DNA of 33,548 bases, taken from the NCBI GenBank assembly GCA_002269645.1, contig NIVC01002268.1:1-33548 (forward strand), given 5' to 3'. The notes beneath the pieces are model-generated. The model made no database searches. It saw only the letters and a program-made list of their open reading frames with translations, and was not told the DNA's origin. Source of the stretch: Macrostomum lignano. Its lineage: Eukaryota. Position numbers and translations under genes: made by a program. Position 1 is the stretch's first letter. Each line of letters begins with the position of its first letter. Below, one piece after another: positions 278 to 33,548 of the stretch.

Positions 278-921
278 ATTGCCGCTAATCAGACCAACGC
301 TACGCTCAATTCCAAATGGACACGAGCAGAGCAAATTACGGGATGGCCGCAGTCCGGAGCCGATCGGTCCAAACACGCATGTCGAAGAAGCAGACCACCA
401 TGCCATAATGTCCAACGGCACTGATGTTATGATTTCGACACTAGCCAAGATGCCTGGAGCGAATCAGAAGCCATCCAGGGCTCAAGACGCTGCCAAGTTC
501 GGAGTATTTCGATACAGTTCCTATAACTTGCAAGGCGCCAGCGGATTTGTGAAAGGTGACCGTCTGGCCTCCGGTGCAGCAGCGAAACTGACGCAGCAGC
601 AGCGACGACAGCAGCAGCTGTAGCGAAGATTCGTTCAAACAGCGACTGGCTAAGAAGTTCTCAGCTGAGCCAGCATCGTTAAGGTTGAGTAGGCGGCAAG
701 TCAACTGGAAAAAGCCCTCTGGAGACCACTGGCAAAGCGAGGCGTTTAACAGCCCGAGCGGGGACGGGCCTCGAGCCGGCTCAGACAGAGAGCTCAGCAA
801 TTCTCTGCAATTCGGCGACGGCAGCCATGGGGACACTCTGGAGTTCCAGCTGACGAACGAATCTGCCATTGAAGATTTGGAGCGGCGAAAAAATGCCAAA
901 GGATTCTCAACTCTGAAGCCG
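278..921 (+). CDS. Probable upstream low-complexity (Ser/Asp/Gln-rich) exon of the galectin-fold gene
   Basis: Acceptor-like ttcatag ends at 277. The phase-0 donor CCG|GTAAGA at 921/922 matches the phase-0 acceptor at 1209. Frame 0 is open 279-623 and frame 1 is open 592-921, so a continuous exon needs further frameshifts around 560-600. Confidence 0.35.
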
Positions 922-1208: not shown

Positions 1209-4200
1209 TCCGACAAGTTGTCGATAACAGTCGGTTCGGTATGGAGCTTTACTTTGGGCTGCATTCCGGCGAATAAGTTGAAAGCTCCTTTACCTGTGAT
1301 ATTCTACAGGTGACATGAAGCTATATATATTTTTGAACTATACAGATAATTCCATTCCGAGCGCGACTCCCAGTGCAAATACGGTATGGACACAGCATTG
1401 TGATTTACGGCCGAATGACCAACTACTCTTCAGCTGGGTGAGACTAACTGTTAAAATGTATCTTTAAATATAGTTTTTCATGCGCTGAACAAGCGTTTAA
1501 AATATTGGTAAAAATCACACTGCTGCTCTTCAGGCTTAAATTGTCTTTGGAAAATCTCGATTACTCGCCCGGTGCCCAGGCCTTCGAGTTGCTGATTTCC
1601 TTCCCTGGCGGAGCCGACCAGCCGTCGCTGATGCACACCTGCCAGCTAATTGGGGGGCAACCCGTCTGCGAGGCGAAGGCGCTGCTGTCACCAAAGCAGA
1701 ACGACGAGTTTCGTCTGGTGATTTGTTTCAAGCGACTGGGACTCAGCGTAAGATTTCTAACCTTACTTCTTGGGCATCTGACGAGTAGCCGCAGACCAGA
1801 ACAGCTGGGAGTTTGAAGAGGATTTAATGAGGAGTCCACCGTTTTTTTCATCCAACTCTTGTTTAATTCGAAAGGCGACGAAAAGTTGTTTGCAATCTGG
1901 AAGGATCTGTCTTGGCATTGAGTTGGCGTAGGTTTAACCTGACGAACTATTTTTTTCAACCGGTTTTCAGACGGCTCTCGCCGACACGGAATGCGTGTTA
2001 CCGCATCACATTCCGGTGTCCGACTTCACTCACCTGGTGCTGCACCCGACTGCGAGTACACTAGCGTGGAGTTTCACGAACGCCTGGAGCTGCCGCTACG
2101 CGAACACCTGGCCTGCCCGCTCAGCCTGGTTGAATCTGTGCGGCTCGGCCTCGGCCGGACAGCAGCTCCACCGGCCTCCTGTTCGGCCTGGCCGACGGCG
2201 CGGCCATGACCTGCTCGCTCAGCATCGCCAGCCTGACAGCTACGGTAGGTCGAGCCGATCCGGACGACACTTGCAGCAGCAACGGCGGCGACGACGGTGG
2301 CGGCTTCGTCAAGGAGATGGAGAAACGCGGTTTAAACCAGCTGGCGAAACTGCGCAGCGTTTTGCTGACAATTCACGGCCAGGTGGTTCGGGTGAGTTTC
2401 TCAGGGGTGCTGCAGCCAATTAAGGCGAAAATGGAGTCGCAGCTAACAGGAAGGCAGAAGTACGAGTATAGCCCTGGAATTCTCCTTGTAGGGCATGTAC
2501 AGGCATGTGGGTAGTTTAATGTTTCAGGTTTCTTAAGTAGTCTTTAGGTCAGACTGTTTTTCCACTCTGATACCTGCTAATCCACCGCGTCTAATAATAG
2601 AACTAGACAACATAGATCAGACCATTTTAATGTACTTGCATAGGCAATTAAAGTAGAAGGACACGAAACTTTATTTTCCTAGAAATGGGCTGGAGGCTGC
2701 GTTGAATCCAGCAACGCCATAGACACTTGTGCGCGTGATCTAGGCGTTGCTGAATTTAGCACACTCGTGCGCCACCCATTATCCCGAGTTCCGACCTTCG
2801 TCTAACCACCCATTTGTCGCTCGGAAGTACCATAGACAAAACCATTATCCAGAACTCAAGGACTAAATGCTGCCGTATTGGAGAAGTATGGGGGAAACTG
2901 TACGCCTACATTTTCTGGAAGTACAGTACATTTTGTAATTTATAGTATATGTGCCAATAGGAATTATTGACTGATCGGTGTTCGTTTATTGTGTCTGAAA
3001 TGCATTAATAATGAGTTTCAATTAGGCAGATTTCTCGTTAACTCCGAATTCAGATTCATATTAATGGCGAGTACATAATGACGTACTTGATGAAGTTGGA
3101 TGCTAGAAGAGTGAAGAGCCTGTACATTGAAGGCGATCTAATGCTGGAGGATTTCAAAATCAAGGAGATGGTGAGAGTTTGAAATTATAAAATTTTGTTT
3201 TAAGAAAGCACATGCCTAATTGCAATTAACAATTTTTAACAAAAAATCTCTCATATCTTGCCATATCTCGTCCAATCAGAGCTCACTACCTCACCCATAG
3301 CCCTGCCCGATGAATCGTGTCTGCTATCCGCTCAGCCAATCGGAGCTCACTACCTCACCCATAGCCCTGCCCGATGAATCGTGTCTGCTATCCGCTCAGC
3401 CAATCGGAGCTCACTACCTCACCCATAGCCCTGCCCGATGAATCGTGTCTGCTATCCGCTCAGCCAATCGGAACTTACTACCTCGCCCCATCATTCCCTC
3501 CAGCGAGCCAATCCACTGACGGCTCTTCCCAAGCAGCTGCCAGTAGGCGGCCAGATTCGAATCTGGGCCCGGTTGCTGCCGTCGGCCGCTTCGATGCCGG
3601 CCGGCAACAACTGTCGAATTTCGCTTCGAACCGGCGCTGACCGAGCTCAGCGGACTTTGCCCTCCTTGCCCGGGTGGCGCCCAGCAGAGAATCGGACAGC
3701 GGCGCCGTCGGCTGTCTGGCCCTCAGCGCCATCGTCAACGGTCAGCAGAGCGACGAAGCAGTGGACGCCACCAGCCGCAGCGACGCAAAAGATAGGGACG
3801 GCTTCGCCTTCGAGACGACGATCGTCCGACGCTTGAAGGACTTCTACGTAGTGTTGGACAGCGGGCACAACGCCAGCCTGCGCCACCGGATCGACCCGGA
3901 CCTGGTGACTCATCTGCACCTGGCTGGCGCCGCCACCGCCTTTCTGTTTGTCAGCTTCCCAGCCAGCCTGTGGCTTCCCTACACCAATCGCCTGCCGCCG
4001 ATGGATCCGAGTCGGCCGGGCCGGTTGATCCGTCTCGGTCTGTCGGACGGGGCCGACCTGGCCGAGACCGACGGGGGCAACTACGGAGCGTAAGTGTCGA
4101 TTAGGCCCAGGGTCCAGATTTCAGTATCCCATGCAGTTTGGCCTTTTTACAGAAAATCTTAAGATGAAAGAGACATCAGGTTTGGAAGAGATATGGAAGC

Positions 4201-6846
4201 AACGACCAAGCAAACCCGGTACAGTTTAACTTGGTGTTTCAAGCCGTTTCCACTGATGAAGTAGGGCGCTACCTCAAAAAGTCGAATTAGATAGTCTACG
4301 CTACTTATCAAGTAGTATGACGCATGTCTTACACGTGTATGTTATTTTAATGTTTAATAAAAATGAGGGCAAAGTAGATCAGCGGTTAACGCGTCTGTCT
4401 GATTCTGCAGCGCAGAAGTGCCCGGGTTCGATTCCGTGCGCGGCTTGAGACATGCAACTGCGCCCATCAGCTTAGCTTCTTTCGATGGGAAACGTTCTCA
4501 TTTTCTTGAGAATTTCCAATTTGCAGCAGCCGCACCGTTTCGCTGGCCATCGGCGCCGATCCGGACGGCGTCAAGCCGCTGATCTGCGAGTTCTGCCTGA
4601 CCGACAGCGGCCAGCAGGCGGCCCTGGCCTGGATGAACGACGCCCGCCAGACTCGAGTGGCTGAGCTGTGCCCGGTGCCGCTGTTTAGCGAGATTCGAAC
4701 CATCGACCTACTGCTGGCGGATAACGGCGATTGCAAAGTGAGTGGCAAAGCAAAAAGTTGATTTCCCTGTCCGATCGTTGATTTCCCTGTCCGATAGTTG
4801 ATTTCCCTGTCCAAATGTTGATTTCCCTGTCCGATAGTTGCTTACCCTGTCCGATAGTTGATTTCCCTGTCCGATAGTTGATTTCCCTGTCCGATAGTTG
4901 ATTTCCCTGTCCGATAGTTGATTTCCCTGTCCGATCGTTGATTTCCCTGTCCGATCGTTGATTTCCCTGTCCAAATGTTGATTTCCCTGTCCGATAGTTG
5001 CTTACCCTGTCCGATAGTTGATTTCCCTGTCCGATAGTTGATTTCCCTGTCCGATAGTTGATTTCCCTGTCCGATCGTTGATTTCCCTGTCCGATAGTTG
5101 ATTTCCCTGTCCGATCGTTGATTTCCCTGTCCGATCGTTGATTTCCCTGTCCAAATGTTGATTTCCCTGTCCGATAGTTGCTTACCCTGTCCGATAGTTG
5201 ATTTCCCTGTCCGATAGTTGATTTCCCTGTCCGATCGTTGATTTCCCTGTCCGATCGTTGATTTCCCTGTCCGATAGTTGCTTATCCTGTCCGATAGTTG
5301 ATTTCCCTGTCCGATAGTTGATTTCCCTGTCCGATAGTTGATTTCCCTGTCCGATAGTTGATTTCCCTGTCCGATAGTTGATTTCCCTGTCCGATAGTTG
5401 ATTTCCCTGTCCGATAGTTGATTTCCCTGTCCGATAGTTGATTTCCCTGTCCGATAGTTGATTTCCCTGTCCGATAGTTGCTTATCCTGTCCGATAGTTG
5501 ATTTCCCTGTCCAATAGTTGCTTACCCTGTCCGATAGTTGCTTATCCTGTCCGATAGTTGCTTATCCTGTCCGATCGTTGCTTACCATGTCCGATAGTTG
5601 ATTTCCCTGTCCGATAGTTGCTTATCCTGTCCGATCGTTGCTTACCCTGTCCGATAGTTGCTTATCCTGTCCGATAGTTGATTTCCCTGTCCGATAGTTG
5701 CTTATCCTGTCCGATAGTTGATTTCCCTGTCCAATAGTTGCTTACCCTGTCCGATAGTTGCTTATCCTGTCCGATAGTTGCTTATCCTGTCCGATCGTTG
5801 CTTACCATTTCCGATAGTTGATTTCCCTGTCCAATAGTTGCTTACCCTGTCCGATAGTTGCTTATCCTGTCCGATAGTTGCTTATCCTGTCCGATCGTTG
5901 CTTACCATTTCCGATAGTTGATTTCCCTGTCCGATAGTTGCTTATCCTGTCCGATCGTTGCTTACCCTGTCCGATAGTTGCTTATCCTGTCCGATAGTTG
6001 ATTTCCCTGTCCGATAGTTGCTTATCCTGTCCGATAGTTGATTTCCCTGTCCAATAGTTGCTTATCCTGTCCGATAGTTGATTTCCCTGTCCAATAGTTG
6101 CTTACCCTGTCCGATAGTTGATTTCCCTGTCCAATAGTTGCTTACCCTGTCCGATAGTTGCTTATCCTGTCCGATCGTTGCTTACCATGTCCGATAGTTG
6201 ATTTCCCTGTCCGATAGTTGCTTATCCTGTCCGATAGTTGCTTATCCTGTCCGATAGTTGATTTCCTGTCCGATAGTTGATTTCCCTGTCCGATAGTTGC
6301 TTATCCTGTCCGATAGTTGATTTCCCTGTCCGATAGTTGCTTATCCTGTCCGATAGTTGCTTATCCTGTCCGATAGTTGATTTCCCTGTCCGATAGTTGA
6401 TTTCCCTGTCCGATAGTTGCTTATCCTGTCCGATAGTTGATTTCCCTGTCCGATAGTTGATTTCCCTGTCCGATAGTTGATACTTCAATTGCAAGCCTCA
6501 ATTTAACATTCCAAGCCTCATTCTAACATTCCAAGCCTCAATCTAACATTCCAAGCCTCATTCATTTCAAGCCTCATTCTAACATTCCAAGCCTCAATCT
6601 AACATTCAAGCCTCATTCTAACATTCCAAGCCTCAATCTAACATTCCAAGCCTCAGTAAAACACTGTGCTCTGGTTGTTAGTTCAGAGCACAGATTGTGA
6701 TCACAGTTTAAGAAGCCGCTACATTGCAGCTTGTAGTCAACAAGCGAATAGTCTCCAGCTACAGAGCTGACATCTCTCCTAAGGACGCCAGATGGATAGT
6801 CATCACTGGCAATATCAGTCTGCTCAATGTTGAATTGGAAAATCAG
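1209..6846 (+). CDS. Four-domain galectin-fold (Gal-bind_lectin-like) protein, core exons; frameshifted in this sequence (assembly errors or pseudogene)
   Basis: Exons 1209-1309, 1534-1747, 1971-2391, 3054-3170, 3504-4089, 4527-4737 and 6730-6846 all have AG/GT boundaries with matching phases (0/2, 2/0, 0/0, 0/0, 0/2, 2/0, 0/0). The translation shows the galectin C-terminal pattern four times: LPHHIPVSDFTHLVL, IHINGEYIMTYLMKLDARRVKSLYIEGDLML, LRHRIDPDLVTHLHLAG, LVVNKRIVSSYRADISPKDARWIVITGNISL. One base must be added near 2046, 2156 and 3642 to keep the frame. The fold call is from motif recognition only; no HMM was run. Confidence 0.65.
2701..2760. other. Near-perfect intronic inverted repeat (60-nt hairpin)
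   Basis: aatccagcaacgccatagacac (2705-2726) pairs with gtgatctaggcgttgctgaatt (2735-2756) around an 8-nt loop; G-U pairs extend the stem to 2701/2760. Confidence 0.7.
3270..3490. repeat. 64 bp tandem repeat, ~3.4 copies, ending at the 3503 splice acceptor
   Basis: gctcactacc recurs at 3281, 3345 and 3409, with a diverged partial copy near 3473. Confidence 0.92.
4368..4470 (+). mobile_element. tRNA-derived SINE head or tRNA pseudogene (Pol III A and B boxes)
   Basis: A-box-like TAGATCAGCGG at 4375-4385 and B box GGTTCGATTCC at 4425-4435. The acceptor stem does not pair, so this is not an intact tRNA. Confidence 0.55.
4757..6480. repeat. Intronic satellite, 20 bp unit (gttgatttccctgtccgata), ~86 copies
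   Basis: Directly visible 20-bp periodicity with variants cttaccc, cttatcc, ccgatc, ccaaat and ccaata; lies in intron 4738-6729. Confidence 0.98.
6491..6655. repeat. Second ~20 bp minisatellite (caagcctcaatctaacattc), ~8 copies
   Basis: Repeated caagcctca(a/t)tctaacattc directly after the previous array. Confidence 0.9.
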
Positions 6847-6962: not shown

Positions 6963-7055
6963 TCTCTTAGCCAGAGCCTCGAGCAGAACGATCCGACTAC
7001 CTTTTGCGGCATCTGCTGTCAGATGATTCAAAACAGGGCGAAACAACTTGATTAA
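6963..7055 (+). CDS. Candidate terminal exon of the galectin-fold gene (SLSQSLEQNDPTTFCGICCQMIQNRAKQLD*)
   Basis: Phase-0 acceptor gttcag at 6962 follows the phase-0 donor at 6847. An alternative acceptor at 6940 would give VPTSRCSVS*, so this is uncertain. Confidence 0.3.
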   Translation, partial: SLSQSLEQNDPTTFCGICCQMIQNRAKQLD

Positions 7056-9869: not shown

Positions 9870-12076
9870 TCAGTGCTTGCATTTGTAGATGACCACGCCC
9901 AGGCCAATGACGCCGAGAATCGGGCTCAGGCCGATAACCAGGGCGAGGCCGATTGGCACGGCGATGACTATACCGGTGGCCTCTAGGACTAGAATATTCA
10001 ATGAGACAAGGGAATTGGAGCGAATAAAGATTAGAGTGCAGATTGTGTTGGGGCTAACTATAACACCTACTCGGCGGGCGAACGAAGTGATCGAACTCTA
10101 ACGCTGCTAGCTATAGGCTGTTAGGCAAACACCAGCGTTATCGATGCAGCCATAGGCTACGAATTTGTAAATCATTGCAGGTAAACTTATTGCAAGATTG
10201 GCTGCTATCGGATTGTTTAAGAATACATTTACTGGCAATACTACATGTATTCATTTAGTTCTCGAAAGGAAAATTGTTTCCAGCTATCCAAACTAAGATT
10301 CAACCGTAAAATTCTATTTAGTTATAGGCTCAACCTACCGAAGAGTGTTCCGCGGACGAGCTTGCGCAGAGCCGGTCTGCCCGGAAACAGCTTCTGCTTG
10401 CAGCCGAATATGCTGAGGCGACTGCTGTGCCGACCGAAAACAAAGTTGCCAGCGCGCCAGTTCTTGCCGCACACGTAGCAGAATTGATAGCTGCATCGGT
10501 TGCAGGTCATGTGATTGCAGCCTTGATTCTTCTCGATGTACACTTTGCAGGACGGACACTTGCGAGCCTTCCGAATGAACTGCGACCCGTCGAAGTAGGT
10601 CTCCAGACCCCAGTCGCGCAGCATCTGCTTGCCGCTACTGTTGGCGCTGCAGGACATATTCGGGTGTGGCGGCGAGTGGCAGCGGAAGCACCAACTGAAC
10701 TCGCAGCGCTGACAGCGAGTCAGCTCGCCACCGAGCCGCTTGCTGGCCTTTTCATTTGGATTTTTCGTCACCATATTGCACTGCGGGCAGGTCTTCTTGT
10801 TTGGATCGCCGTTGAGGTCCGTCAATATTTCGTAGTACCGATCAGCCCTGTCGCCAAGGAATTCGATGATCTCGCTGACGGTGAGGAAGCAGCTACAGCA
10901 GGGGCAGCCGACTTCCACGGTGCGGGCATATACTTTGGTGCGGACCCACTCGTTGTAGCAGGCGTAGCAGACATGCTGCCCGCAGCAGGTGCGAGCCACC
11001 ACCAACTGATCATCGAGCAGGCACAAGGAACACGTGGCAGAGCAGCGGAAGTTCATGCGCTCCAATCCACTGACCACTCCAGTTCGCGACTGGTACACCT
11101 GAAAGCACTCGGTTAGCATGCCGTGAAGCATAAAGATGTCATGATAGTTTTCCCAGCGTGTTATGCGATCGTTGATAACATTAATCTGCAGATGCGACTG
11201 TGTTTCGGTCAGCTTTTCGTAGACCTGTCTGAAGGTGTGCGGGGCGAGGCCCGTGTCAAACAGGCGCTTGTAGAACACCAGCGTGTCAGTAGTCCGAGAC
11301 AAATTCACCGATTTGCTACGGCTCTCGAAGTCGTACTCGCTTTCCAGGTGATACATTAGCAAGTATTTGAAAAGCTTGAAGAGCGAAATTAAACTGATCG
11401 AGTGAAAGTAGTCTCGCTCTTCCGACAGAAAATTCTGCAGCGCCTCAAGCATAATGAGATGCTCTTCCGAGTCGTCATTGAACAGGGCAGCGTGTTCAGG
11501 AAACAGAAGTATCTTTGCAGAACGTTCCGACCCTGAAGCCGAATCGGATCCTTCGACATTCACTGGCATATCCCGAGTTGCCTCGCTAGATGTGTCGCTC
11601 GCAAACCTGCGTCTGACGGGATCCATGGGCAATGGGCTTGACGTTCGACTGGAAGTCCGACTCGGGGGCTGACTCGAGGATTGAACCGCATCCGCCTCCC
11701 TAACAACACTGGAAGTGCCAGGTTCAGCCTCCGCCTCCTTGCTGCTCAGCGACTTGAGTTCGCTAAAATACTTCTCGGTGAGCCGGGCGAAGATCTCACG
11801 ATCCTGACTAGATAGCGATAGCTTCCTAGATTTGTTGCATACCCACATTTTAAGGCGTTCCAGCGCCTCCTCTGTGTCCTGCTTAGCAAGAACATCCAGC
11901 TGTTCTAGGTCTAGATCATCAGCTAGCTCTTCGTCCGACGCACTGTCCGACTGATCGGAAACAGTGGCTGTGTCCGGATTCAGCTGAGTTACTTCGTTTT
12001 CGACAGTCTGATCGCAGCCATCTGCTACGCGAATTTCTTGCAGCGACAGCGACACTGGCTCCTCCTCTGTAGTCAT
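9870..12076 (-). CDS. RNF217: RBR-type E3 ubiquitin ligase, RNF217-like (RING1-IBR-RING2 plus C-terminal TM); exons 12076-10339 and 9988 (or 9982)-9870
   Basis: RING1 CSLC...CCGQHVCYAC...CPCCSC; IBR CPQC...CQRCEFSWCFRCHSPPH...C; RING2 CPSCKVYIEKNQGCNHMTCNRCSYQFCYVC with the catalytic Cys. The following GRHSSRLSIFGCKQKLFPGRPALRKLVRG matches my recollection of the RNF217 post-RING2 motif. The phase-1 donor G|GTAGGT at 10339/10338 joins a phase-1 acceptor encoding the hydrophobic segment LEATGIVIAVPIGLALVIGLSPILGVIGLGVVIYKCKH* (stop 9872-9870). Confidence 0.9.
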
Positions 12077-13952
12077 ATCTGTCTGTTGAATAGATATTTG
12101 CTGAGCACTGGTGCTTATCCTACTAGCTTTATGTGCGTTGCGTATGGCGTATTAAATACGTGTTTCGTGTACGCAATACCGCTAAGTCTAGTTGGTAAGA
12201 ACCGTGCGCGCGTCGACTTTACACTGTAGCAAGGCGGTGAGAGAAGAGAGAGGGTTTATATTCTCTTTCTGCCCTCTCTACCCTCTCTTCGTGCCCCAAG
12301 CAAAGCCCTTTCCACTGCGGCCCTCCTCGTCCCTGCAATATTGCATCTCGTTGGCATGCCAACAGCGCGCCCAGCCCTACTTCTATTTCTTACCCAATGT
12401 GCAATCTGAGTACATGCATGTACGCTCGTAGCAGTTCCAATGGGCGGGTGCACCTCACCCTCACCCACTCAGATGGGCATACGGAATAGTTTAACCAACC
12501 TCCCCTCCCATTGCCAAATTTTTGGCGTCAAACGTCATTGCAGTTTCAGATTGTTGAAAGAGTTACGCACAGAGTTAAAATTAGAATCGCGCCTATACGT
12601 CAGTGCGGGGCCACGCTGGCCTCACTTTCCGGGTCTGGTGTTCACTGTTTTTATTCCCAAAATAGTTTTCCGCTTACCCTTCTTTCTGTCACTTAAAAGT
12701 CTGGATGTACAGTCCGACTGCTAAGTGTGCTCGGAAACCCAGCTGACCACACATTCGAATTCGAATAAGCTTAGCCAAGACAAGAGAAGACAGAACTCAA
12801 GAGGGCCATTATATGCTCCACCAATGCAGCTGGAATACGCCACTACGCAGAGCTCACAATGTGCCTCTGTCCCTAATACCAACTAGACTTTGCATTTCTT
12901 CAAGTAAGCAAGAAAAGAGTAGCCTTAGTCCAAAACCCTAATGCTGTCATTTTCTGTGACTTCTTTTCTGTGAGAACAACGAACACAGAACCCGTACGAA
13001 TTGTTGCCCGTGAACTATAATACTTCAGTAGAACACTTCTGCTGTACCCTTGCGTCTCTCTCTCCCTGTGCCAAAGGAAATTCGACCGTAGACTGGCACT
13101 GTTGTCGCTTCTTCGCTTCTCGTCTTTATTCTTGGCCACATGCATAAAAAGTGTAGCTAAAAGCCTCGCAACTTGCGCACATGCAGGGCAGCTTGTTGGA
13201 ATTGCTTTTCGTGTGGGCGTTTTCTATGGATATCATGTCCTGAAGATTGTGAAAGAATTTTGCCGAGTTGTCTTTCTTGGCTTTAAAAAATGCCAATAAA
13301 TGTAAAAATTACACACGCAAGCCCAAATACGTGTACAGAGTGTGTAAAATTCATGTAAAATTGAGTCTATCTCTGTTTTTGCTTCCCGCAATTCAACTTG
13401 AGTTCAATTTACGAGAGAGAGAGAGAGTGTACAAAACAATTTGCACATATACAATTCGTATGGGTATTTTTAATTTGACACAAAAATGCTAGTGAAATAG
13501 CGCAGTTTTGTCTGTAGAAGGGAATTATTAAAACTATTTCTAAATTAAAATTCATGCTTCTATTGTCAATTAGTCATAATAGCATTATATCAGCATATAG
13601 TCTGGGGATTTTTAAAGTATTCATACACATAATGTACTGAACGCATACTGAAATGCTCAGGATTACTGTCAAAGTTCAAATTACACCCAATAGACAGCTT
13701 CAGCTAAACGGTTTGCCTGGTCATATGTATCTATTAAAATGTATCCTGCATCTGCATGTACACAGTACATCGTTAAAAATCGCGCAAATTTTGTGTCATA
13801 TAATTGCAGCCAGCAAAAGGTTTGATTGTTTCAGTTGATTCAAATGTATACCCATAAAAATAATTTTATTATTTTTCTAAGTATTTTCTTTCTGCTTCTA
13901 ATTGCTTCGCGAATTACAGCTTGTTAGCATCTTTATACTCATGTAGAACAGC

Positions 13953-19867: not shown

Positions 19868-22800
19868 ATGAGTTTTATGCGCAGCCAGCAGTCAAACAAC
19901 ACAAGCCTGTACACCCTGCTGCAGTCCCGTCGAGCTCCAGCGCACTCTATTGGCAGCCAAACCGCCATAACGCCAGGCAAATCCCAGGATCGCATCACCC
20001 GGCACGCGCAGGCCAATCATTATCTACCAACCGATGCCCCAGTGTCCTTCCTTGATAGTCGTAGCAGTCCGGCCAGGCCGAAACCTTCCAGTAAGCCGAA
20101 TTCGTTGAAAGCGGCCAACAATCTGGCCGTGTCGGCCGCCTCGCTCGACCAGCCGTCCGTAGCAGCAGCGTCCGGTCCGGCCGCCGAGTCCTCTTTAGGC
20201 AGCTTGGAGCTGCTGAGCTCCCGCCTGCAGACCATGATGGCAGAGAGACGCGACGAGCTCAACAAGGAGGCGGCCTACCTGCTCAAATGCCAGGTGGCAG
20301 CGCCTGGCAGCGCCGACGTCAATAGCGAGGACGCTCCGGCGCCGCCTCCGCGTCGACAAAGCGCCGCAGCGCACAATCAGAAAAGGCAAGAACAGAAATC
20401 TGACAGCTCGCGTCTAAGCCGAAGCCGATCAGCCGATGACACTTTGAATCTGTCCGACGATATTGACGTTGAATTAAACGAGAGCGTCTCCAACGATTGT
20501 GTACTTGATGAAGGCGCAAGACCGTCCGGCAGCCTGGCGCCAATCAGGTCGGCAAAGCAGCCTAGCAGCGTTGGCGAATCCAGCGGCGGCAAAAGAGGAA
20601 CATTCGGCTTCCTCAGCCGGTTCAGATCCGGCCAGCAGCAGCAGCACCGTCAAGACGGCTCCTCCGGCGCCGCCGCCGCCACCGCCACCGCTTCTCCGAA
20701 AAAGTCGCACAGTTCGCGCTTCCCCAGCTTCAGAAAACTGTTGCGAATGCCTAAAAAGATCAAACGATCGCCGCTTGATGAGAATAAATTTCAGTCGACG
20801 GATTCGAAGAATGAGGCGGCGACTGTTGTGCCCGATGGAAATGGAGGTTAGTCATCTGGGAGGGGGCTGTCGTTTCGTATTCTTTGAATTTCATACCGGT
20901 ATTCCTAAGATTTTAATTATTTAATCTCTGAACTCCCAATGCCCACCTGAAAGACTGAGATTAGTATCCCAATGCTCACCTCAAAGGACCACTTTTAGAA
21001 TTCCAATGTCCACTCCGAAGGCCAGGATTAGAATCCCAATGTCCACCTCGAAGGACCAGGATTAGAATCCCAATGTCCACCTCGAAGGACCAGGATTAGA
21101 ATCCCAATGTCCACCTCGAAGGACCAGGATTAGAATCCCAATGTCCACCCCGAAGGACCAGGATTAGAATTCCAATGTCCACCCCGAAGGCCAGGATTAG
21201 AATTCCAATGTCCACCCCGAAGGACCAGGATTAGAATCCTAATGTCCACTCCGAAGGCCAGGATTAGAATTCCAATGTCCACTCCGAAGGCCAGGATTAG
21301 AATCCCAATGTCCACCTCGAAGGACCAGGATTAGAATCCCAATGTCCACCCCGAAGGACCAGGATTAGAATTCCAATGTCCACCCCGAAGGCCAGGATTA
21401 GAATCCCAACAATGTCCACCCCGAAGGCCAGGATTAGAATTCCAATGTCCACCCCGAAGGACCAGGATTAGAATTCCAATGTTTTAGTCGCACGACTGAA
21501 GGTCTGCTGGCTGCAATTTGATACACACAGAGATGCATTGTTTTCACCTCGCACAGGTTTCACTACATTTGCTTAGTCAGTGGAACTTCCGTTAAGCTCT
21601 CTCGCTCTCTCTCTCTCTCAGCCGCGGCTTGTGTAACAAAATTTTACTTTGGGTATCCATCGAAACTAGTTCCAACCAACCATATAAATGGAAAGTGGTT
21701 GATCTGATTCGCAAAATTGTCGCCTTACATGTATGCAGCTGCGGGGATGCACTTGGAAAGCTTCAATATGGCTTTATTGGCTGGTAAGAGTGTATAGACC
21801 AATAATCAAATAAAACTACTTAAATTATCGATACTTTTTTTAGAGAACTACAGAACTTCAACTAACTTGGACCAAATTCAGATTGCCGGAATAAAAGTTA
21901 ACAAAGTTGTTCATAACACGGACGCCATAAAAAAAGAACTAGAACTATTTTTTAAACCTTCACAAGCTGGTTGCCGATACAGAACAATTCAAGCAAACTA
22001 ATGCCTTTTGAAGGTCATTTCCTACCAATATTATTTTTATCTCTGTGCTGTAGCTGAGGAGAAACTCCGCGAAGCTTTTAATTAACCAAAAGAGACTGCA
22101 GATAATAGATTTTTTTCGATGGGCCGCGATTCAATGATGGAGAAGCTGCGATAAGATACTCGCACTGGGGTATAGAATAAGTCCAAGCCCTCATCGCGTA
22201 TTCCCGGCCAGTCAGGTTAATAATTAAGTCGATCAGGTCGGGAATGCCCCGTTCGCTGCAACAGCAGCAGCCACTGCCACAGAACTGCATTAGGTCATAG
22301 ACAATAAAGCCAATCAAAGCCACCACCACAGAGCTGCTCTCAGCCATAGATAATGAGGCCGATTAAAGCCGATGTCACAGAACTGCACTCGGCCATAGAC
22401 AATAAAGCCGATCAAAGCCACTGCTACAGAGCAGCTCTCGGCCATAGACAATAAAGCCAATCAAAGCCACCGCCACAGAGCTGCACTCGGCCATAGACAA
22501 TAAAGCCGATCAAAGCCACTGCTACAGAGCAGCTCTCGGCCATAGACAATAAAGCCAATCAAAGCCACTGCCACAGAACTGCACTCGGCCATAGAAAATA
22601 AAGCCAATCAAAGCCGCCACCACAGAGCTGCTCTCAGCCATAGATAATAAGGCCGATCAATGCCGCTGTCACAGAACTGCACTCGGCCATAGACAATAGC
22701 CAAAAAAAGCCACTGCCACAGAACTACACTCGGCCATAGACAATAAAGCCGATCAAAGCCACTGCTACAGAGCAGCTCTCGGCCATAGACAATAAAGCCA

Positions 22801-25800
22801 ATCAAAGCCACTGCTACAGAGCAGCTCTCGGCCATAGACAATAAAGCCAATCAAAGCCACTGCCACAGAACTGCACTCGGCCATAGACAATAAAGCCAAT
22901 CAAAGCCACTGCCACAGAACTGCACTCGGCCATAGACAATAAAGCCAATCAAAGCCACTGCTACAGAGCAGCTCTCGGCCATAGACAATAAAGCCAATCA
23001 AAGCCACTGCCACAGAACTGCACTCGGCCATAGAAAATAAAGCCAATCAAAGCCGCCACCACAGAGCTGCTCTCGGCCATAGACAATAAAGCCAATCAAA
23101 GCCACTGCCACAGAACTGCACTCGGCCATAGACAATAAAGCCAATCAAAGCCACTGCCACAGAACTGCACTCGGCCATAGACAATAAAGCCAATCAAAGC
23201 CACTGCCACAGAACTGCACTCGGCCATAGACAATAAAGCCAATCAAAGCCACTGCCACAGAACTGCACTCGGCCATAGACAATAAAGCCAATCAAAGCCA
23301 CTGCTACAGAGCAGCTCTCGGCCATAGACAATAAAGCCAATCAAAGCCACTGCCACAGAACTGCACTCGGCCATAGAAAATAAAGCCAATCAAAGCCGCC
23401 ACCACAGAGCTGCTCTCGGCCATAGACAATAAAGCCAATCAAAGCCACTGCCACAGAACTGCACTCGGCCATAGACAATAGAGCCCATCAAAGCCACTGC
23501 TACAGAACTGCATTCGGCCATAGACAAGTTTCGGTAAATGCCCAATCGGGCGGATAATTTCATTAGAAATCAATTTAGGATTCTCTACTTGATTTTTTCT
23601 TCTAATGAGAGACAATAGCTTTCAAGAATTTGCTTGGCTTGCAGGTCTGATCAGCTTGGTTGGCTTTATTGTTTTTAGTCAAGTCACAAGCACGCGACTT
23701 ACATAGGACAGGAAAACTCGTTTAACTATATCTTTGTGGATATAAATAGAAGGCTTGAACTTTTATTTGTAAACAAGATGCATAGCCATATTCTTAAATC
23801 ATATTTGTTTAAATTGATTTGAAGGGACCATATTACTTTAAATGCATTATTTTATCAAGAGAAGGGCCTTTAATTTAAGAGATTTTCTGGTCTACAAGAC
23901 ATGCATGTTTCAATAAACTCGTAGTTTTTATGTCAAAAAAATCTGAAAGTTCCTGTCTTCGTAAGTATATTTTGGTGCTAAACCAGCCTCCAGTATGTTT
24001 TCTAAGAAACGTGGAACCGGTAGTTACTGCTGGAGCGAATGTGAATTCTCGACTCGATCGGTTTAATTATCAACTTGACTAAAATTACCAAGTCTAATTG
24101 CTTATTGTAGGGATAAAAATAGCATCGAGTTATCTAAATCTGACTGTTTCCATCCCGCAGCCGCTGATGCAGCGCATAGCAACGGCCTACCAGACACAGC
24201 AACGGCGGCTAAAGCTCCATCAGATTCGCCAGATGATTCTTCATCCGCTTACTTAACTGCCAGTATGACCAGTCCGGCTGCGGACTCTGGTGCAACAGTT
24301 CCGACTGCCAATGGAGTTGCCGATGGACCATTTGCTGGGACTGAGTCTAATAGTAGTAGTGCAAAGCCTGCTCTGCTCAGCCCCATTGTTACAGGTGAGG
24401 TATCAAAGTGAACTGTTAACGGTAAAAATACCAAGCCTATATAATTCGCCCGTAGAACTACCAAGTATGATGGCTACTACGGGCTGATTGCTTGAGAGTA
24501 GCTGAGGATGTCCAGCATATGAGGTGTCCGTTATCACCTAGTGCTATCTGTTGAAGGTCCAGAAGCTCCGCCTGGGTGAAGGCCAGTGACCAAAGAAGTC
24601 AGAGCTGATGCAGACACATGCGGTCAATGTGCTGATGAAATTTGGAGGCTTGGCAAGGCACTTGGAAAACACTGGCGCTTATCGGAAAAATCCGACCTGT
24701 TGGCAGAATTGTCGAATATCTCGACGGTCCAAAAGGCTAGCAGCGACTTTATTCTTGTTACGCTCAGACAGGGTGTACAGCGTCCCTGATTTTGTCATCG
24801 TCGGTGCATGTACACTCTGCGTCTTGGGGGGGGGTCTCAATCGCCAGAAAAGCTTTCAAGGCCAATTTTGGTGTCTATTGGCTAGCTGACAAATTTAAAA
24901 AAAAGTTCTTATTTAAAAATTGATACTTCTTGCTTAACAAATTTCTCTATTCTTATCTCAGCAATAATAAACTGGTTACATGCTCGTATTTTTACTGCCA
25001 AGTCTAGTGTAATGCAATCGCAATGGCGTGTTATCAAAATTTGCGCAGTATTAATTATAACGGATGCTATTTATATTAAGGAATGATTGTGTGGCAAATC
25101 ATATATAGTCCTTAGCTTTATCAAGCTGGCTTCTATATAATATTTAATATGCATACATTTTTCTAGCTTCTTGCCTGTCTGTTTCTTTAATAGTGACAAT
25201 ACCAAATTGTTTACTTCAGTTACCATGGCTACAGCCGATGGCAAAGCTTTGCACAGTGAAAATCTGCCTAACAAACTGCTGACAACTTCAATTGATAGCA
25301 ACGGCAACGCTGACGAGCCCAATGTTGTTAATGATGCTGCTAAGGAGCCTGGGAAAGCTGAGGATTTGCCCACTGGTAAGCTGGTTGAATTAATAATAGT
25401 TTTATATTAATTGATAGGACCGGCTATATTGCACCGTTAATAAGATAGATTGATTGTTTGACTGGTAGAGACAGATAGGTAGAAAGAAAGTTACTATCTT
25501 AATGTAAATTAAGATACGTTTGACCAAAGATCATGTATACACAAGATGGGCCACTCATTAACCGCTTATGTGCCCATAGAAGCGTATGTGAAAAAACTTG
25601 AAAAAAAAACTACTGAACTCTATTTCACCAGTAGTTTCTGCAGTGCATGCATCATTCTTAGTTTGATTGAGTAGCTTCTTATTTGATTCATGGGAAGTTC
25701 TATCAAATTCTCAGAAAAAAATAGCGTCTATGTCCCTAAGCTACTGAACTCTATTTCACCAGTAGTTTCTGCAGTGCATGCATCATTGTTAGTTTGATTG

Positions 25801-28625
25801 AGTAGCTTCTTATTTGATTCATGTGAAGTTCTATCAAATTCTCAGAAAAAAATAGCGTCTATGTCCCTAAGCTACTGAACTCAAAATTTAAGCAACCCAT
25901 GTCCAAGTATGAAAAATCAAATTTTGAGTTAGGACTCGCTTGCATTTATTATAACAGCATTACTATAAGACTTTTCTTGACAAAAACTACTAAAATTCGC
26001 AGTACAAGTGTCCACCGAGGCACCGATACCGCCGCCACCGGAGCCGGCAACTAGCGAAATTGTTGAAGTTCCCGCACCCGAAGCCGCTGACGTCCCAGTG
26101 ACTCTTCGCGGCAATCGCAGCGGCGGCTCGCCTAGCGGCGTCAAAGTGACAGCAATGCCGGCGGCAGGGGCTGCTCAGCAGCAGCAACTGTTGCTGCCTC
26201 TACCCGTTGGCACGTCAACGCCAACTCGGGGCTCGCCAGGCAGAGGCCGACTAGGCTACAATAGGAGAAAGGTATAACTATTATGCAATGTCAATACAAT
26301 GGACAGGTATTTCAACAGAGATAGAAAAAAGGTTGTGGGCAGCATAGATAATGGGCAATGTTTAATACATCTATGTTTATTTATATCAATATCGTATGCG
26401 AATGGCATAGTGCTGAGTCATGGACAGGGAGCGCTTGGTAACATAGAGCTTGCCAGCTACAGAAGGGGTGCCATTTACAGAAAGGGCGCCAGCTACAGAA
26501 GGGGCGCCAGATACAGAGAGGGCGCCGATGCAGAGAGGGCGCCAGCTACAGAAGGGGCGCCAGACACAAAAAGAGCGCCAGATACAGAGAGAGAGAGCGC
26601 CGATGCAGAGAGGGCGCCAGATACAGTAGGGGCGCCAGTTACAAATGGGGCGCCAGCTACAGAGGGGGGCACCAGCTACAGAGGGGCACTAGCTACAGAG
26701 GGGGCGCCAGCTACAGAGGGGGCGCCAGCTACAGAGGGGGGCACCAGCTACAGAGGGGGCACTAGCTACAGAGGGGGCGCCAGCTACAGAGGGGGCGCCA
26801 GCTACAGAGGGGGGCACCAGCTGCAGAGGGGGCACCAGCATCAGAGGGGGGCACCAGCTACAGAGGGGGCACCAGCTGCAGAGGGGGCACCAGCTACAGA
26901 GGGGGCACCAGCTGCAGAGGGGGCACCAGCTACAGAGGGGGCACCAGCTACAGAGGGGGCGCCAGCTACAGAGGGGGGCACCAGCTACAGAGGGGGCGCC
27001 AGCTACAAAGGAGTATCAGCTGCAGCAAAAAATTTTTATACATTAAAAACCGCCCCTCGGCCGCAGACTAAGAGCTGCACCGAATGCGACGTGCCTGTCA
27101 GCTCCGGCGGGGTCGACAGTTCAGCAGCCGAAGCGTCCGATTTGGTCGCCGCCGTCGTGTCAGCCTCCGCATCCGCCGATGCCGCTGGGGTCAGCGCGGC
27201 CGCTCTACTCGCTGACGCCAAGGCGCGGGAGCGCTCCTCTCTAATAATGATTAGCGCGGCGATGCGCGGCGCCGCCATCCTGGCCGCCGGCATGACCCGG
27301 TCGCTTAACTTCGACGCTTTGCACGCCGCCGAACTCGACGGCGAAGATGCCGACGCCGATGCCGCCGAGCAGCAGTCGGACGGCGACGGTGAAAAATGCG
27401 CCGGCCGCTACTTTTTAATGCTTGCCGACCGGGAGGAGAAGAAGATTCGGACCGAGACAGACTGGATTGAAGCCGCTCTGGCCGACCGGCCGGACTTGTC
27501 CGAAGAGGGTCAGTTCCGTACCTGTCTGATCTGCATATCTATCTTATCTATCTATCTATCCGTATCTAGTCTAGTATCTAGTCTAGCCCGTCTATCTTCG
27601 TATCTAGTCCATATATCTCATTTAGTCCATCTATCTCAGTGTCTAGCCCATCTATCTTAGTGTCTAGCCCATCTATCTCCGGGTCTAGCCCATCTATCTC
27701 CGTATCTAGTCCATCTATCTCAGTTTCTAGCCCATCTATCTCAGTTTCTAGCCCATCTATCTCAGTTTCTAGCCCATCTATCTCAGTTTCTAGCCCATCT
27801 ATCTCCGTATCTAGTCCATCTATCTCAGTTTCTAGCCCATCTATCTCAGTTTCTAGACCATCTATCTCAGTTTCTAGCCCATCTATCTCAGTTTCTAGCC
27901 CATCTATCTCAGTTTCTAGCCCATCTATCTCCGTATCTAGTCCATCTATCTCAGTTTCTAGCCCATCTATCTCAGTTTCTAGACCATCTATCTCCGGGTC
28001 TAGCCCATCTATCTCCGTATCTAGCCCATCTATCTCAGTTTCTAGACCATCTATCTCCGGGTCTAGCCCATCTTTAATCCGTGTCGATGCTCAACAAGCA
28101 CAACAGCTAGTGCTCAACACGTATAAACTTTCAGTCGCCGGAATATTTCGCGTGGCCGTCGGCAAGGCGAAGCTGTTCCTAGCAGAGAAGCTGGCCCAGT
28201 TCCGCGGCCTGTGCGAGGACAACCTCTCTGGCGGGGTCACCCAGTACTGCGACTTGAACGGCTTTTGGGCCATCTGCGGCCTACAGATTGACGATCTGAA
28301 TAACAAGCTGCTGCAACAGTGCCGAACTATTCGCGACGCTGGATTTGTTGTCATAGCAACCAGCTCGAAGGCTTCGGCGGCGTCCGGCTCGCCGGAGCAG
28401 CAGGCCTCGACGGCGCCAACAACGAAGGCAGCCGCGAGACGGCCGACCGCGGCAAAGAAAGCGACAACTTCCTCCGCGACGGCAAAGTCGGGAGGCGGCG
28501 GCGGCGGCGAAGGCGATCGGCAGCGCCGGGAGCGGCTGGCGGAGATGAAGCGCCAGGCTCGCAAGAAGATGCTGGCAGCCTCGGCCGGTGCGGCTGACAA
28601 CGGAGACGATGTGATTTTCATGTGA
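19868..28625 (+). CDS. DLGAP: DLGAP/SAPAP/GKAP-family protein (Mars/Vulcan/HURP-like), 6 exons, 856 aa
   Basis: Exons 19868-20846, 24161-24394, 25220-25375, 26003-26271, 27067-27508 and 28135-28625 have canonical GT-AG sites and matching phases (total 2571 nt, no frameshift). The last two exons join into AGRYFLMLADREE...LSEE|VAGIFRVAVGKAKLFLAEKLAQFRGLCEDNL...DLNGFWAICGLQIDDL, the GH1 signature (compare LSEEVLGK..SAVGSAQLL..QKFQQFRGLCE.N...DLAGFWD.LQL.IED), followed by RERLAEMKRQA. The start and any additional small exons are less certain. Confidence 0.88.
20955..21482. repeat. Intronic minisatellite, 33-34 bp unit, ~15 copies
   Basis: gattagaatcccaatgtccacctcgaaggaccag at 21026, 21060 and onward. 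Confidence 0.95.
21596..21619. repeat. (CT)n microsatellite
   Basis: ctctctcgctctctctctctctc. Confidence 0.8.
22270..23526. repeat. Intronic satellite, 49 bp unit, ~25 copies
   Basis: ggccatagacaataaagccaatcaaagccactgccacagaactgcactc with period 49 (e.g. 23173 and 23222); three recurring sub-variants. Confidence 0.97.
25610..25882. repeat. Recent 131-bp tandem duplication (2 copies plus 11 bp)
   Basis: ctactgaactc at 25610, 25741 and 25872; the copies differ at about 2 positions. Confidence 0.93.
26450..27010. repeat. GC-rich intronic minisatellite, ~18 bp unit (gcaccagctacagagggg)
   Basis: Visible periodicity with variable G-run length; it produces the GAPATE and GASYRG peptides in the ORF track. 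Confidence 0.93.
27540..28075. repeat. Intronic minisatellite, 21 bp unit (ctagcccatctatctcagttt), ~25 copies
   Basis: 21-bp period inside intron 27509-28134; it produces the spurious SSPSISV repeat ORF. Confidence 0.95.
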
Positions 28626-29332: not shown

Positions 29333-30890
29333 TCTACCCCTCTCTCCCACTCTTACCCTCACTTTATCCCACACCCTCTCCCACTCTTACCCCTCACTTT
29401 ATCCCACACCCTCTCCCACTCTTACCCCTCACTTTATCCCACACCCTCTCCCACTCTTACCCCTCACTTTATCTCACACCCTCTCCCACTCTTACCCCTC
29501 ACTTTATCCCACACCCTCTCCCACTCTTACCCCTCACTTTATCCCACACCCTCTCCCACTCTTACCCCTCACTTTATCCCACACCCTCTCCCACTCTTAC
29601 CCCTCACTTTATCTCACACCCTCTCCCACTCTTACCCCTCACTTTATCTCACACCCTCTCCCACTCTTACCCCTCACTTTATCCCACACCCTCTCCCACT
29701 CTTACCCCTCACTTTATCTCACACCCTCTCCCACTCTTACCCCTCACTTTATCCCACACCCTCTCCCACTCTTACCCCTCACTTTATCTCACACCCTCTC
29801 CCACTCTTACCCTCACTTTATCTCACACCCTCTCCCACTCTTACCCCTCACTTTATCTCACACCCTCTCCCACTCTTACCCCTCACTTTATCTCACACCC
29901 TCTCCCACTCTTACCCCTCACTTTATCTCACACCCTCTCCCACTCTTACCCCTCACTTTATCTCACACCCTCTCCCACTCTTACCCCTCACTTTATCCCA
30001 CACCCTCTCCCACTCTTACCCCTCACTTTATCTCACACCCTTTCCCACTCTTACCCCTCACTTTATCCCACACCCTCTCCCACTCTTACCCCTTACTTTA
30101 TCTCACACCCTCTCCCACACTTACCCCTCACTTTATCTCACACCCTCTCCCACTCTTACCCCTCACTTTATCTCACACCCTCTCCAACACTTACCCCTCA
30201 CTTTATCTCACACCCTCTCCCACACTTACCCCTCACTTTATCTCACACCCTCTCCCACACTTACCCCTCACTTTATCTCACACCCTCTCTCTCTCTCTCT
30301 ATCTCTCTCCCACTCTTACCCCTCACTTTATCTCTCACCCTCTCCCACTCTTACCCCTCACTTTATCCCACACCCTCTCCCACTCTTACCCCTCACTTTA
30401 TCTCACACCCTCTCCCACACTTACCCCTCACTTTATCTCACACCCTCTCCCACACTTACCCCTCACTTTATCTCACACCCTCTCTCTCTCTCTCTATCTC
30501 TCTCCCACTCTTACCCCTCACTTTATCTCTCACCCTCTCCACTCTTACCCCTCACTTTATCTCACACCCTCTCCCACTCTTACCCCTCACTTTATCTCAT
30601 GCCCTCTCCCACTCTTACCCCTCAATTTATCTCACACACTCTCTCTCTCTATCTCTCTCCCACTCTTACCCCTCACTTTATCTCTCACCCTCTCCCACTC
30701 TTACCCCTCACTTTATCTCACACCCTCTCCCACTCTTACCCCTCACTTTATCTCACGCCCTCTCCCACTCTTACCCCTCAATTTATCTCACACACTCTCT
30801 CTCTCGATCTCTCTCCCACTCTTACCCCTCACTTTATCTCACACCCTCTCCCACTCTTACCCCTCAATTTATCTCACACCCTCTCTCTCT
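29333..30890. repeat. 35 bp pyrimidine-rich satellite (ccctctcccactcttacccctcactttatc(c/t)caca), ~40 copies with (CT)n inserts
   Basis: 35-bp period; the + strand is almost free of G. Confidence 0.97.
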
Positions 30891-31684
30891 GACCCACCGC
30901 TGCCATTACTCTGTTCCCCTATTCTTAAAATCAAGCAGCCAATCGATTCCTGTCTCTAAGCCATCTCTAAGCCACAGCTAGTGTACGGTACAGTCAGTCT
31001 AGCTCGATAGTCTTCCCTTAATTGTGTGTATTTTTTACCCATCTGGCGTGCTTCGTCATCAATATAAATATATCGATCGATCTGATAAGTAAATACCCGG
31101 CTGTATCACTGACACTTTGCTATAATTATATAATAATTTTTTGACCCCAGCCCTCTTGTCTGTCGTGGTGCTGCCGACTTTATATTTTCTACTTTACGCC
31201 AGCCCCGTGTGGGCGGTTCGCAGTTATTTATTTATTTATTTGCTTAACCTTTAGAGTCTCTTGCTGTTTAACTCACAATTTCCCGGACGGTATTTTTGTT
31301 ACTTAATTAGGATCGTAGTATAGTTAAAAACTTTTTTCCTAATTTTTATTATTCAACCTGATTGATCTCTCTTGCATCGGCAGGTGGAGTAGTGGCTGCC
31401 GCTGCGATTTTATGATAATTAATTGCTACATCATTTTGGTTATTTGTTTTATATAAAACAGCTGCACGCTCATGTCATGGACTCTGTATTGATTGACCTT
31501 TTACACAAGCTTTGTTTTTTTAATCTATTGTAAGTATTAGCAGTGCGGGTTTAGCTACTCAAATATTTATGCAGTCGGCTGTTTAAAGAATCTCGGCAGT
31601 TTTATTTTTACTTTGTCGGTAAGAAAGCAATAAAAAATTATCAAATGCTTCTGACTGTTTTCTTGTGAGTAGATACATTGCGTG

Positions 31685-32075
31685 CTGTTGCTATGTGGTC
31701 GCTATGTTGTTGCTACGTGGTCGCTATGTTGTTGCTAATGCTATGCTGTTGCTGTGGGGTCGCTATGTAGTTGCTATGCTGTTGCTAATGCTATGCTGTT
31801 GCTGTGGGGTCGCTATGTAGTTGCAATGCTGTTGCTATGTAGTTACTATGGGGTTGCTATGTAGTTGCAATGCTGTTGCTATGTGCTCGCTATGTTGTTG
31901 CTATTCTGTTGCTACTTGATCGCTATGTTGTTGCTAATGCTATGCCATTGCTATGTGGTAGCTATGTAGTTGCTATGTGGTCGCTTTGCCGTTGTTATGT
32001 TGCTATGCGGTTGCTATCTGGTCGCTATGTGGTTTCTATGATGTTATTATCGTTTCAAGACCAATCGTTGCTATG
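31685..32075. repeat. Degenerate simple repeat built on gttgctatg
   Basis: Numerous gttgctatg/gtcgctatg/gtagctatg copies. Confidence 0.85.
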
Positions 32076-32682: not shown

Positions 32683-33548
32683 AGTAGATATGAGATGGAA
32701 GCAGTAGATATGAGATGGAAGCAGTAGATATGAGATGGAAGCAGTAGATATGAGATGGGAGCAGTAGATATGAGATGGGAGCAGTAGATATGAGATGGGA
32801 GCAGTAGATATGAGATGGGAGCAGTAGATATGAGATGGGAGCAGTAGATATGAGATGGAAGCAGTAGATATGAGATGGGCAGCAGTAGATATGAGATGGA
32901 AGCAGTAGATATGAGATGGGAGCAGTAGATATGAGATGGGAGCAGTAGATATGAGATGGGAGCAGTAGATATGAGATGGAAGCAGTAGATATGAGATGGG
33001 AGCAGTAGATATGAGATGGAAGCAGTAGATATGAGATGGGAGCAGTAGATATGAGATGGAAGCAGTAGATATGAGATTGAAGCAGTAGATATGAGATGGA
33101 GCAGTAGATATGAGATGGAAGCAGTAGATATGAGATTGGAGCAGTAGATATGAGATGGAAGCAGTAGATATGAGATGGGAGCAGTAGATATGAGATGGAA
33201 GCAGTAGATATGAGATGGAAGCAGTAGATATGAGATGGGAGCAGTAGATATGAGATGGAAGCAGTAGTAGATATGAGATTGAAGCAGTAGATATGAGATG
33301 GGAGCAGTAGATATGAGATGGAAGCAGTAGATATGAGATTGGAGCAGTAGATATGAGATGGAAGCAGTAGATATGAGATGGGAGCAGTAGATATGAGATG
33401 GGAGCAGTAGATATGAGATGGAAGCAGTAGATATGAGTTGAAGCAGTAGATATGAGATGGGAGCAGTAGATATGAGATGGAAGCAGTAGATATGAGATGG
33501 GAGCAGTAGATATGAGATGGAAGCAGTAGATATGAGATGGGAGCAGTA
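32683..33548. repeat. 20 bp purine-rich satellite (gcagtagatatgagatgg(a/g)a), runs off the window end
   Basis: 20-bp period, more than 40 copies. Confidence 0.98.

Follow-up and report, generated by a model that had tools for sequence, protein, structure and literature searches.

Introduction

The carbohydrate-recognition domains (CRDs) of galectins are encoded by three exons, which cover strands S1-F2, strands S3-F4 (or S3-F3) and the rest of the domain, with scallop galectins using the S3-F4 type (PMC10343441). Galactosides are held by contacts of His45, Asn47 and Arg49 with the 4-OH of galactose and of Asn62 and Glu72 with its 5-OH; Arg49 and Glu72 also contact N-acetylglucosamine, and Trp69 stacks on the galactose ring (PMC7053492). 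The tandem-repeat galectins, such as human galectin-8 and -9 and Tl-gal of the nematode Toxascaris leonina, combine two different CRDs and a linker. Here we describe a gene of Macrostomum lignano encoding four consecutive galectin-like domains (D1 to D4), which lies in a 33,548-nt stretch of DNA (contig NIVC01002268.1, assembly GCA_002269645.1, forward strand), referred to in full as the window.

Four tandem CRDs are known from the oyster proteins CvGal1 and CvGal2, in which they are mutually alike and retain most galactose-binding residues (PMC7053492), and from lamprey LOC116947959, in which two CRD types alternate as 1/3 and 2/4 (PMC10343441). In the galectin-related proteins GRP/LGALSL, LGALSL2 and GRIFIN the fold has been kept and motif changes have abolished galactoside binding (PMC10343441). 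Finally, chimera-type galectin-3 has one functional CRD behind a Pro/Gly-rich oligomerisation tail.

Fold of the four domains

The domains occupy positions 1346-2080 (D1), 2081-3170 (D2), 3504-3964 (D3) and 3965-6846 (D4) of the window. The whole protein, represented by UniProt A0A1I8J927 (P0002), matches the Pfam family PF00337 (Gal-bind_lectin) at 33.8 bits against a cutoff of 22.1 (E 2.6e-8). In the M. lignano paralogues the same profile gives 54.3/30.0 bits for D1, 29.1/25.7 for D3 and 18.3/24.8 for D4, with 13.0 or no match for D2. Three-sequence alignments of each domain were compared by hhalign with canonical CRDs cut from an eel protein, and these comparisons returned 97.7% for D1 (135 columns), 97.4% for D3, 90.4% for D4 and 63.8% for D2. 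When the sequences of the PDB were searched with a single sequence, galectin-8 was the top match (E 0.0013), and a profile of the two-domain unit (termed A-B, where A stands for D1 and D3 and B for D2 and D4) reached galectin-8 at E 3.4e-15. This profile also aligns colinearly, in a single stretch, with the two CRDs of the T. leonina tandem-repeat galectin 4hl0 (2-275 to 9-276), and the best 60 of its 147 matches are almost all galectins or congerins.

Structure prediction points the same way. The AlphaFold2 model of the whole four-domain region, made from a three-row alignment, has a predicted local distance difference test (pLDDT) value of 49.7, which is too low for residue-level reading; it is all-beta and finds galectins first in Foldseek. 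For D3-D4, a six-row alignment gave a model with a pLDDT of 72.1 and a predicted template modelling score (pTM) of 0.74, for which galectin-8, Tl-gal and galectin-9 are the best Foldseek matches over about 310 columns (E down to 1.4e-13), and single CRDs are matched at template modelling (TM) scores of 0.63-0.78 (TMt). The domains are accordingly modelled as galectin-type two-sheet beta-sandwiches, and these analyses agree with the first-pass annotation, made from the DNA sequence alone, which had proposed four consecutive galectin-fold domains.

Some results weigh against this assignment. Scanned singly, D2 (16.8 bits) and D3 (13.3 bits) of the window protein fall below the PF00337 cutoff and D1 and D4 give no PF00337 hit, and hhalign aligns D2 to galectin by its C-terminal half only; the Pfam match therefore holds for the whole protein and is sub-threshold for its single domains. 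A different ConA-like sandwich of the laminin-G/LNS or SPRY kind, merely resembling galectin, would also give neurexin LNS and laminin LG chains as structural neighbours, and such chains are among the Foldseek hits. They score a TM of 0.3 or less, though, and rank under the galectins, while PF00337 is the only Pfam family matched, the leading profile matches in the PDB are of galectin type as described above, and the intron positions are those of galectins. We regard such a resemblance as highly improbable.

A duplicated two-domain unit

Comparison of domain-family profiles by hhalign pairs D1 with D3 (95.9%, 128 columns) and D2 with D4 (84.5%, 128 columns), all other pairs lying at 2-55%. The two units can be aligned over their full length, with 20-26% identity, and have a linker motif, FP..L.LPY...FP, in common (EFP.ELELPY..FP and SFP.Q.GLPY..FP, respectively, in the two units). 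These pairings had already been suggested in the first-pass annotation, which read the protein as (A-B)x2 and quoted the segments LPHHIPVSDFTHLVL (1998-2042) and LRHRIDPDLVTHLHL (3878-3922). Raw pairwise comparison shows the likeness weakly, as Smith-Waterman alignment with shuffles gives z of 2.0-3.8 and does not separate D2-D4 from D2-D3, and paralogue profiles were needed to resolve the pairings, with which they are clear. The four domains thus arose by internal duplication of a two-domain unit like that of tandem-repeat galectins, in which the A type (D1, D3) has stayed near canonical CRDs and the B type (D2, D4) has diverged strongly. The order of the four domains is shared by all three paralogue groups of M. 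lignano, and the duplication is therefore older than the divergence of at least three paralogue groups.

Like the tandem-repeat galectins, each unit consists of two non-identical CRDs joined by a linker and is colinear with those proteins by profile and by fold, the A type best matching the N-terminal, F4-type CRDs. Unlike them, the M. lignano protein has the unit doubled to four domains, has lost the sugar contacts and carries a disordered tail of about 550 aa in front. The four tandem CRDs are a likeness to oyster CvGal1/CvGal2 and to lamprey LOC116947959. The oyster pattern of mutually similar CRDs with galactose-binding residues retained is not found here, where A and B are barely alignable (the 2-55% given above) and all four sites are degenerate. 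Four-CRD duplications are presumably independent in each lineage.

Exon structure and intron positions

The window carries the 3' two-thirds of the gene, whose full product is about 1,170 aa, as eight exons on the + strand between 1346 and 7055, all with GT-AG borders. When spliced and repaired (see below), they encode 613 aa with 100% residue identity to the C-terminus of P0002/A0A1I8J927.

D1 begins in the exon at 1346-1437, which encodes strands S1-F2 (IIPFRARLPVQIRYGHSIVIYGRMTNYSSAG) and ends in phase 2 at the canonical F2|S3 intron, with position and phase as in the paralogue PAA52624.1 (P0004). The exon at 1534-1747 continues D1 from S3 to F4, and the third (1971-2391) completes D1 (F4-F1) and runs through the linker into D2 as far as F4. 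A 117-nt phase 0-0 exon (3054-3170) encodes the last strands of D2 (F4-F5-S2-F1) and matches positions 87-131 of the Pfam Gal-bind_lectin profile. All of D3, the linker and strands S1-F2 of D4 are encoded at 3504-4089; D4 strands S3 to F4, including the motif LAWMNDAR, follow at 4527-4737 behind an F2|S3 intron of phase 2 as in D1, and the last D4 strands are in a second 117-nt phase 0-0 exon (6730-6846). The gap of 2 kb between these D4 exons is due to intronic minisatellites at 4756-6655, consisting of 86 copies of a 20-bp unit and then a 20/56-bp array. The terminal exon (6975-7055) encodes a Cys-containing tail of 26 aa (6975-7052, SLEQNDPTTFCGICCQMIQNRAKQLD), followed by the TAA stop at 7053-7055, and matches the C-terminus of P0002 and of P0007, a further near-identical public model. 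The tail, with a CGICC cluster that might be a lipidation or metal site, is absent from the paralogues, whose C-termini read ...STCN or ...SCCIN.

The window gene has the CRD exon layout of galectins, with a small S1-F2 exon, a large S3-F4 exon and a last exon. An intron of phase 2 separates F2 from S3 in both D1 and D4, and D1, D2 and D4 share a phase-0 intron at a common alignment column within strand F4, which corresponds to T97|V98 of human galectin-1; this is the sole galectin-type intron of D2, and D3 has neither. The paralogue P0004 (locus L001) has the same intron positions and phases. The intron ahead of each 117-nt exon is hence the ancestral galectin F4-strand intron. The coordinates and phases of both 117-nt exons were correctly given in the first-pass annotation, which took them as one sign that a two-domain unit had been duplicated. 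As the same intron occurs in D1, at the same column and in the same phase, it is not a signature of D2/D4 kinship and reflects the general S3-F4 type of CRD (PMC10343441).

The intron between D2 and D3 (3171-3503) has no counterpart in P0004, where D2 continues into D3 within one 635-nt exon; it could be a gain in the window gene or a loss in the paralogue. About two-thirds of it is a tandem repeat of 3.4 copies of 64 bp (3272-3488).

Upstream, tblastn of P0007 and of another public model, A0A1I8HL23 (P0001), places coding sequence for the disordered N-terminal half at 278-920 (+). The public models have exons at about 278-519 and 726-920, and the gene extends 5' of the window. Relative to these models the window has one extra base near 330-334. 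Positions 520-725 may be an intron or may be coding with another indel: two long open frames overlap there by 29 nt (592-620, CAG-rich), and P0007 and P0002 splice the segment out differently, which may hide a further indel or alternative splicing. The gene start at 1209 that had initially been suggested is not borne out, D1 beginning at 1346. A candidate exon at 1209-1309 was rejected, since it is 101 nt long, breaks the frame and is missing from P0002 and P0007, and since public models join 920 directly to 1346. A minus-strand gene over the exons was likewise discarded, the antisense open reading frames (ORFs) being typical of GC-rich coding sequence and no evidence being found for such a gene.

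Degeneration of the sugar-binding sites

Residues at the canonical contact positions were mapped through profile alignments to human galectin-1 (Met = 1). At H45, N47, R49, N62, W69, E72 and R74, in this order, D1 has E, L, S, a gap, P, E and K; D3 has L, a gap, R, S, Q, S and A; and D4 has a gap, K, L, D, W, D and R. D2 is unaligned at the first four positions and has F, E and E at the last three. No domain thus has the canonical set, the most that any one keeps being two of the seven contacts, and His45, Asn47 and Asn62 are missing in all domains, those of the paralogues included (D2 being unaligned at these positions). The His-Asn-Arg triad and Asn62 are gone from each of the four domains. 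Loss of the triad had been claimed in the first-pass annotation from four motifs that lie where it implied and fit the profile mapping: AFELLISF (1580-1603), which replaces HFNPRF in D1, GGFVKEM (2299-2319), DFALLARV (3653-3676) and NGQQSDE (3737-3757). Its further statement that no Trp is conserved went too far, as D4 retains a Trp, plus an Arg, within LAWMNDAR (4624-4647).

Like the galectin-related proteins, this protein has a degenerate motif; unlike it, they are single-CRD vertebrate proteins, and they show no detectable orthology to it.

Galectin-10 and some fungal galectins have non-canonical glycan specificity, and the M. lignano protein might likewise still be a lectin, with one or more domains binding glycan via a remodelled site, such as W..D.R of D4, or via another face of the sandwich. 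In favour of this, the D4 Trp, at the position of galectin W69 in the alignment, does not vary among the paralogues, W, E and R persist in paralogue D1, and the domains are under constraint (see below); four CRDs would also allow multivalent cross-linking, as in oyster CvGal1 and CvGal2 (PMC7053492). Against this, the loss of His45, Asn47 and Asn62 extends to every domain of every paralogue, and even the D1 Trp, present in the paralogues, is gone from the window gene, a sign that the site is drifting. We consider retained lectin activity rather unlikely and favour loss of canonical binding. Two points count against too strict a form of this preference: the alignments behind the residue assignments are of low confidence in D3 and parts of D4, and, judged from these residues, W..D.R in D4 and W..E.R in paralogue D1 may leave room for some glycan contact.

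Single-base frameshifts

The first-pass annotation described a gene split by three frameshifts that could be repaired. Within the 1.84 kb of coding sequence there are three -1 frameshifts, each a missing C in a run of C: two in the third exon (2044-2047 and 2151-2152) and one in the D3 exon (3640-3642). With one C put back at each site, the 613-aa product is obtained and matches P0002 without a difference, and the three public models P0001, P0002 and P0007 are intact at all three sites. The likeliest origin of the frameshifts is in single-C indels of the assembly or in a (very recent) null allele, more so than in an old, decayed pseudogene, because the product shows no amino-acid difference from the intact model and only the length of C-runs has changed.

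If the three or four single-base indels were instead real, the window copy would be a recently inactivated pseudogene or null allele. This would fit the clustering of three -1 shifts and one +1 upstream, the end of the unrepaired reading frame soon after the first shift, and the GenBank annotation of GCA_002269645.1, which has paralogue proteins in clusters and none for the window gene. It would also fit a neighbouring 1.8-kb ORF of 609 aa (10325-12151), which has no frameshift; indel errors are therefore unevenly distributed in the window, and the frameshifts may be genuine, a point against assembly error. On the other side stand the complete agreement with the intact model over 613 aa, the uniform nature of the three shifts and the intact state of three independent public models, and on balance we think real inactivation unlikely. 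Under either origin, the frameshifts point to poor sequence quality at this place or to a null allele, and they probably explain why the gene was missed in this assembly.

Relatives and the N-terminal region

Homologues were sought with a 594-aa construct, hand-spliced from the open segments. A word-indexed search, with the construct as well as with an alignment as query, found a single near-identical protein, UniRef A0A1I8HL23 (P0001) of M. lignano. Five hits came from an exhaustive HMMER scan covering 1.84 billion representative proteins. P0002, automatically named 'Galectin domain-containing protein', is 100% identical over the whole construct; A0A1I8GPB3 (P0003; 34% identity, E 6e-59) spans the four-domain region, and P0004 (32% identity, E 7.5e-36) covers it from query residue 50, each representing a paralogue group of M. 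lignano. The remaining two come from fish and contain 12 and about 20 canonical galectin CRDs. Just three paralogue groups of M. lignano are thus found in the scanned set, and no vertebrate GRP is among the five hits. Beyond M. lignano and the two fish proteins the scan found nothing, no profile search past M. lignano having been completed, and the lineage restriction proposed in the first-pass annotation agrees with this result. A spliced and frameshifted gene is indeed present, as that annotation had it, but it is hardly hidden, since UniProt already holds it under an automatic galectin label; it is real, catalogued and unstudied. Searches of the literature on Macrostomum galectins and on the paralogue locus tag gave nothing relevant and no paper on the family.

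The label 'Protein SCAR' (SCAR/WAVE) of P0001 was set aside as lacking domain support. Pfam scans of the near-identical longer models P0002 and P0007 gave PF00337 and no SCAR homology or WH2 at E up to 1, and P0001 itself has no precomputed Pfam domain. A longer partial paralogue model, PAA47915.1 (P0010), has four Pfam stretches and, in its N-terminal 90 aa or so, an extra half galectin-like segment (...IRINDIELIKLEHGQLHNEIQMLSLDGDAEFTAVDF), which may represent either a fifth domain or a galectin gene lying upstream and merged into the model, at the paralogue locus outside the window.

The N-terminal region of about 550 aa is acidic (isoelectric point 4.35), with a grand average of hydropathy of -0.9 and 77% disorder-promoting residues. 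Its composition agrees with the disordered N-terminus suggested earlier, and the region is probably disordered. A long non-globular region before the galectin domain(s) is also a feature of galectin-3; the M. lignano tail differs from the Pro/Gly-rich tail of that protein in being acidic and Ser/Glu/Asp/Gln-rich, and it is unconserved even among paralogues. Between near-identical copies, 30 of 553 residues differ in the tail against 1 of 613 in the domains, and 10 of 527 against 0 of 594 in a second pair, a third pair being neutral; the smaller number of differences in the domains than in the tail argues for constraint on the four domains. The protein has no transmembrane segment, and P0004, the sole model starting with Met, has no hydrophobic signal peptide.

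Possible role of the protein

A duplicated tandem-repeat origin, a lost triad, a non-lectin intracellular adaptor and indels in C-runs together make the best joint explanation of the locus, and one to which we give somewhat better than even credence. In its functional part, a protein-interaction scaffold without lectin activity is a reasonable inference from the sequence, as was put forward in the first-pass annotation. The four-domain protein would no longer bind beta-galactosides in the canonical way and would more likely act as an intracellular multivalent adaptor, the surfaces of its beta-sandwiches binding proteins or ligands of other kinds and the disordered half increasing its valency. 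The C-terminal domain of galectin-8 binds a peptide of NDP52, and the structure of this complex (PDB 4han) is among the Foldseek hits; a galectin can thus bind a protein ligand, which gives a precedent for the proposal. Weighing against an adaptor role are the position of the N-terminus of the window gene, which is outside the window, so that secretion stays possible, and literature searches that yielded nothing on binding, expression or interaction of the family.

A more specific and doubtful version, which we put well short of even, is that of an intracellular family restricted to Macrostomum, in which a duplicated tandem-repeat galectin has become a tetravalent, sugar-independent module fused to a fast-evolving disordered tail. 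If true, this would be a natural example of galectin domains wholly repurposed as a protein scaffold, possibly forming condensates or cross-linking components. The protein would add a clear invertebrate case in which the galectin fold is kept and the lectin site lost, four times in one chain, and its paralogues appear to be at different stages of decay, with W..E.R present in paralogue D1 and gone in the window gene. Comparison with it should help in understanding galectin-related proteins and what galectins do inside the cell independently of sugar. Precedents exist for the fold, for the tandem or quadruple architecture and for the loss of binding residues, and no long-standing question is opened; it is the combination of these features and the restriction to M. 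lignano among the 1.84 billion proteins scanned that is new.

Other features of the window

The window is eukaryotic in character: its introns are short and of the GT-AG type, its GC-rich exons are set in sequence richer in AT, and minisatellites are numerous. Within the intron at 4090-4526 of the galectin-like gene, a tRNA-like stretch (4375-4445, +) with a GGTTCGATTCC T-arm motif may be the remnant of a tRNA-derived short interspersed nuclear element. As a tRNA gene it was rejected, being uncalled by ARAGORN and Rfam and having no cloverleaf fold (z 0.58).

The uninterrupted ORF at 10325-12151 is on the - strand and encodes C-terminal IBR/RING-between-RING zinc fingers (Pfam IBR E 5.8e-15); by this domain content it is likely a gene for an RBR-type E3 ubiquitin ligase. 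An open frame at 27582-28622 (+) matches the GKAP domain (PF03359, E 6.5e-11) in its C-terminal part (28080-28622), which is preceded in frame by a minisatellite of 23.6 copies of 21 bp (27582-28073), read as SSPSISV repeats. Minisatellites are unusually dense in the window, with further arrays at 938-1173, 20934-21482, 22269-23527, 26452-27011, 29342-30927, 31686-32045 and 32683-33548. Their periods are 18-70 bp and their copy numbers reach 43; some are contained in long open frames, and the last runs out of the end of the window.

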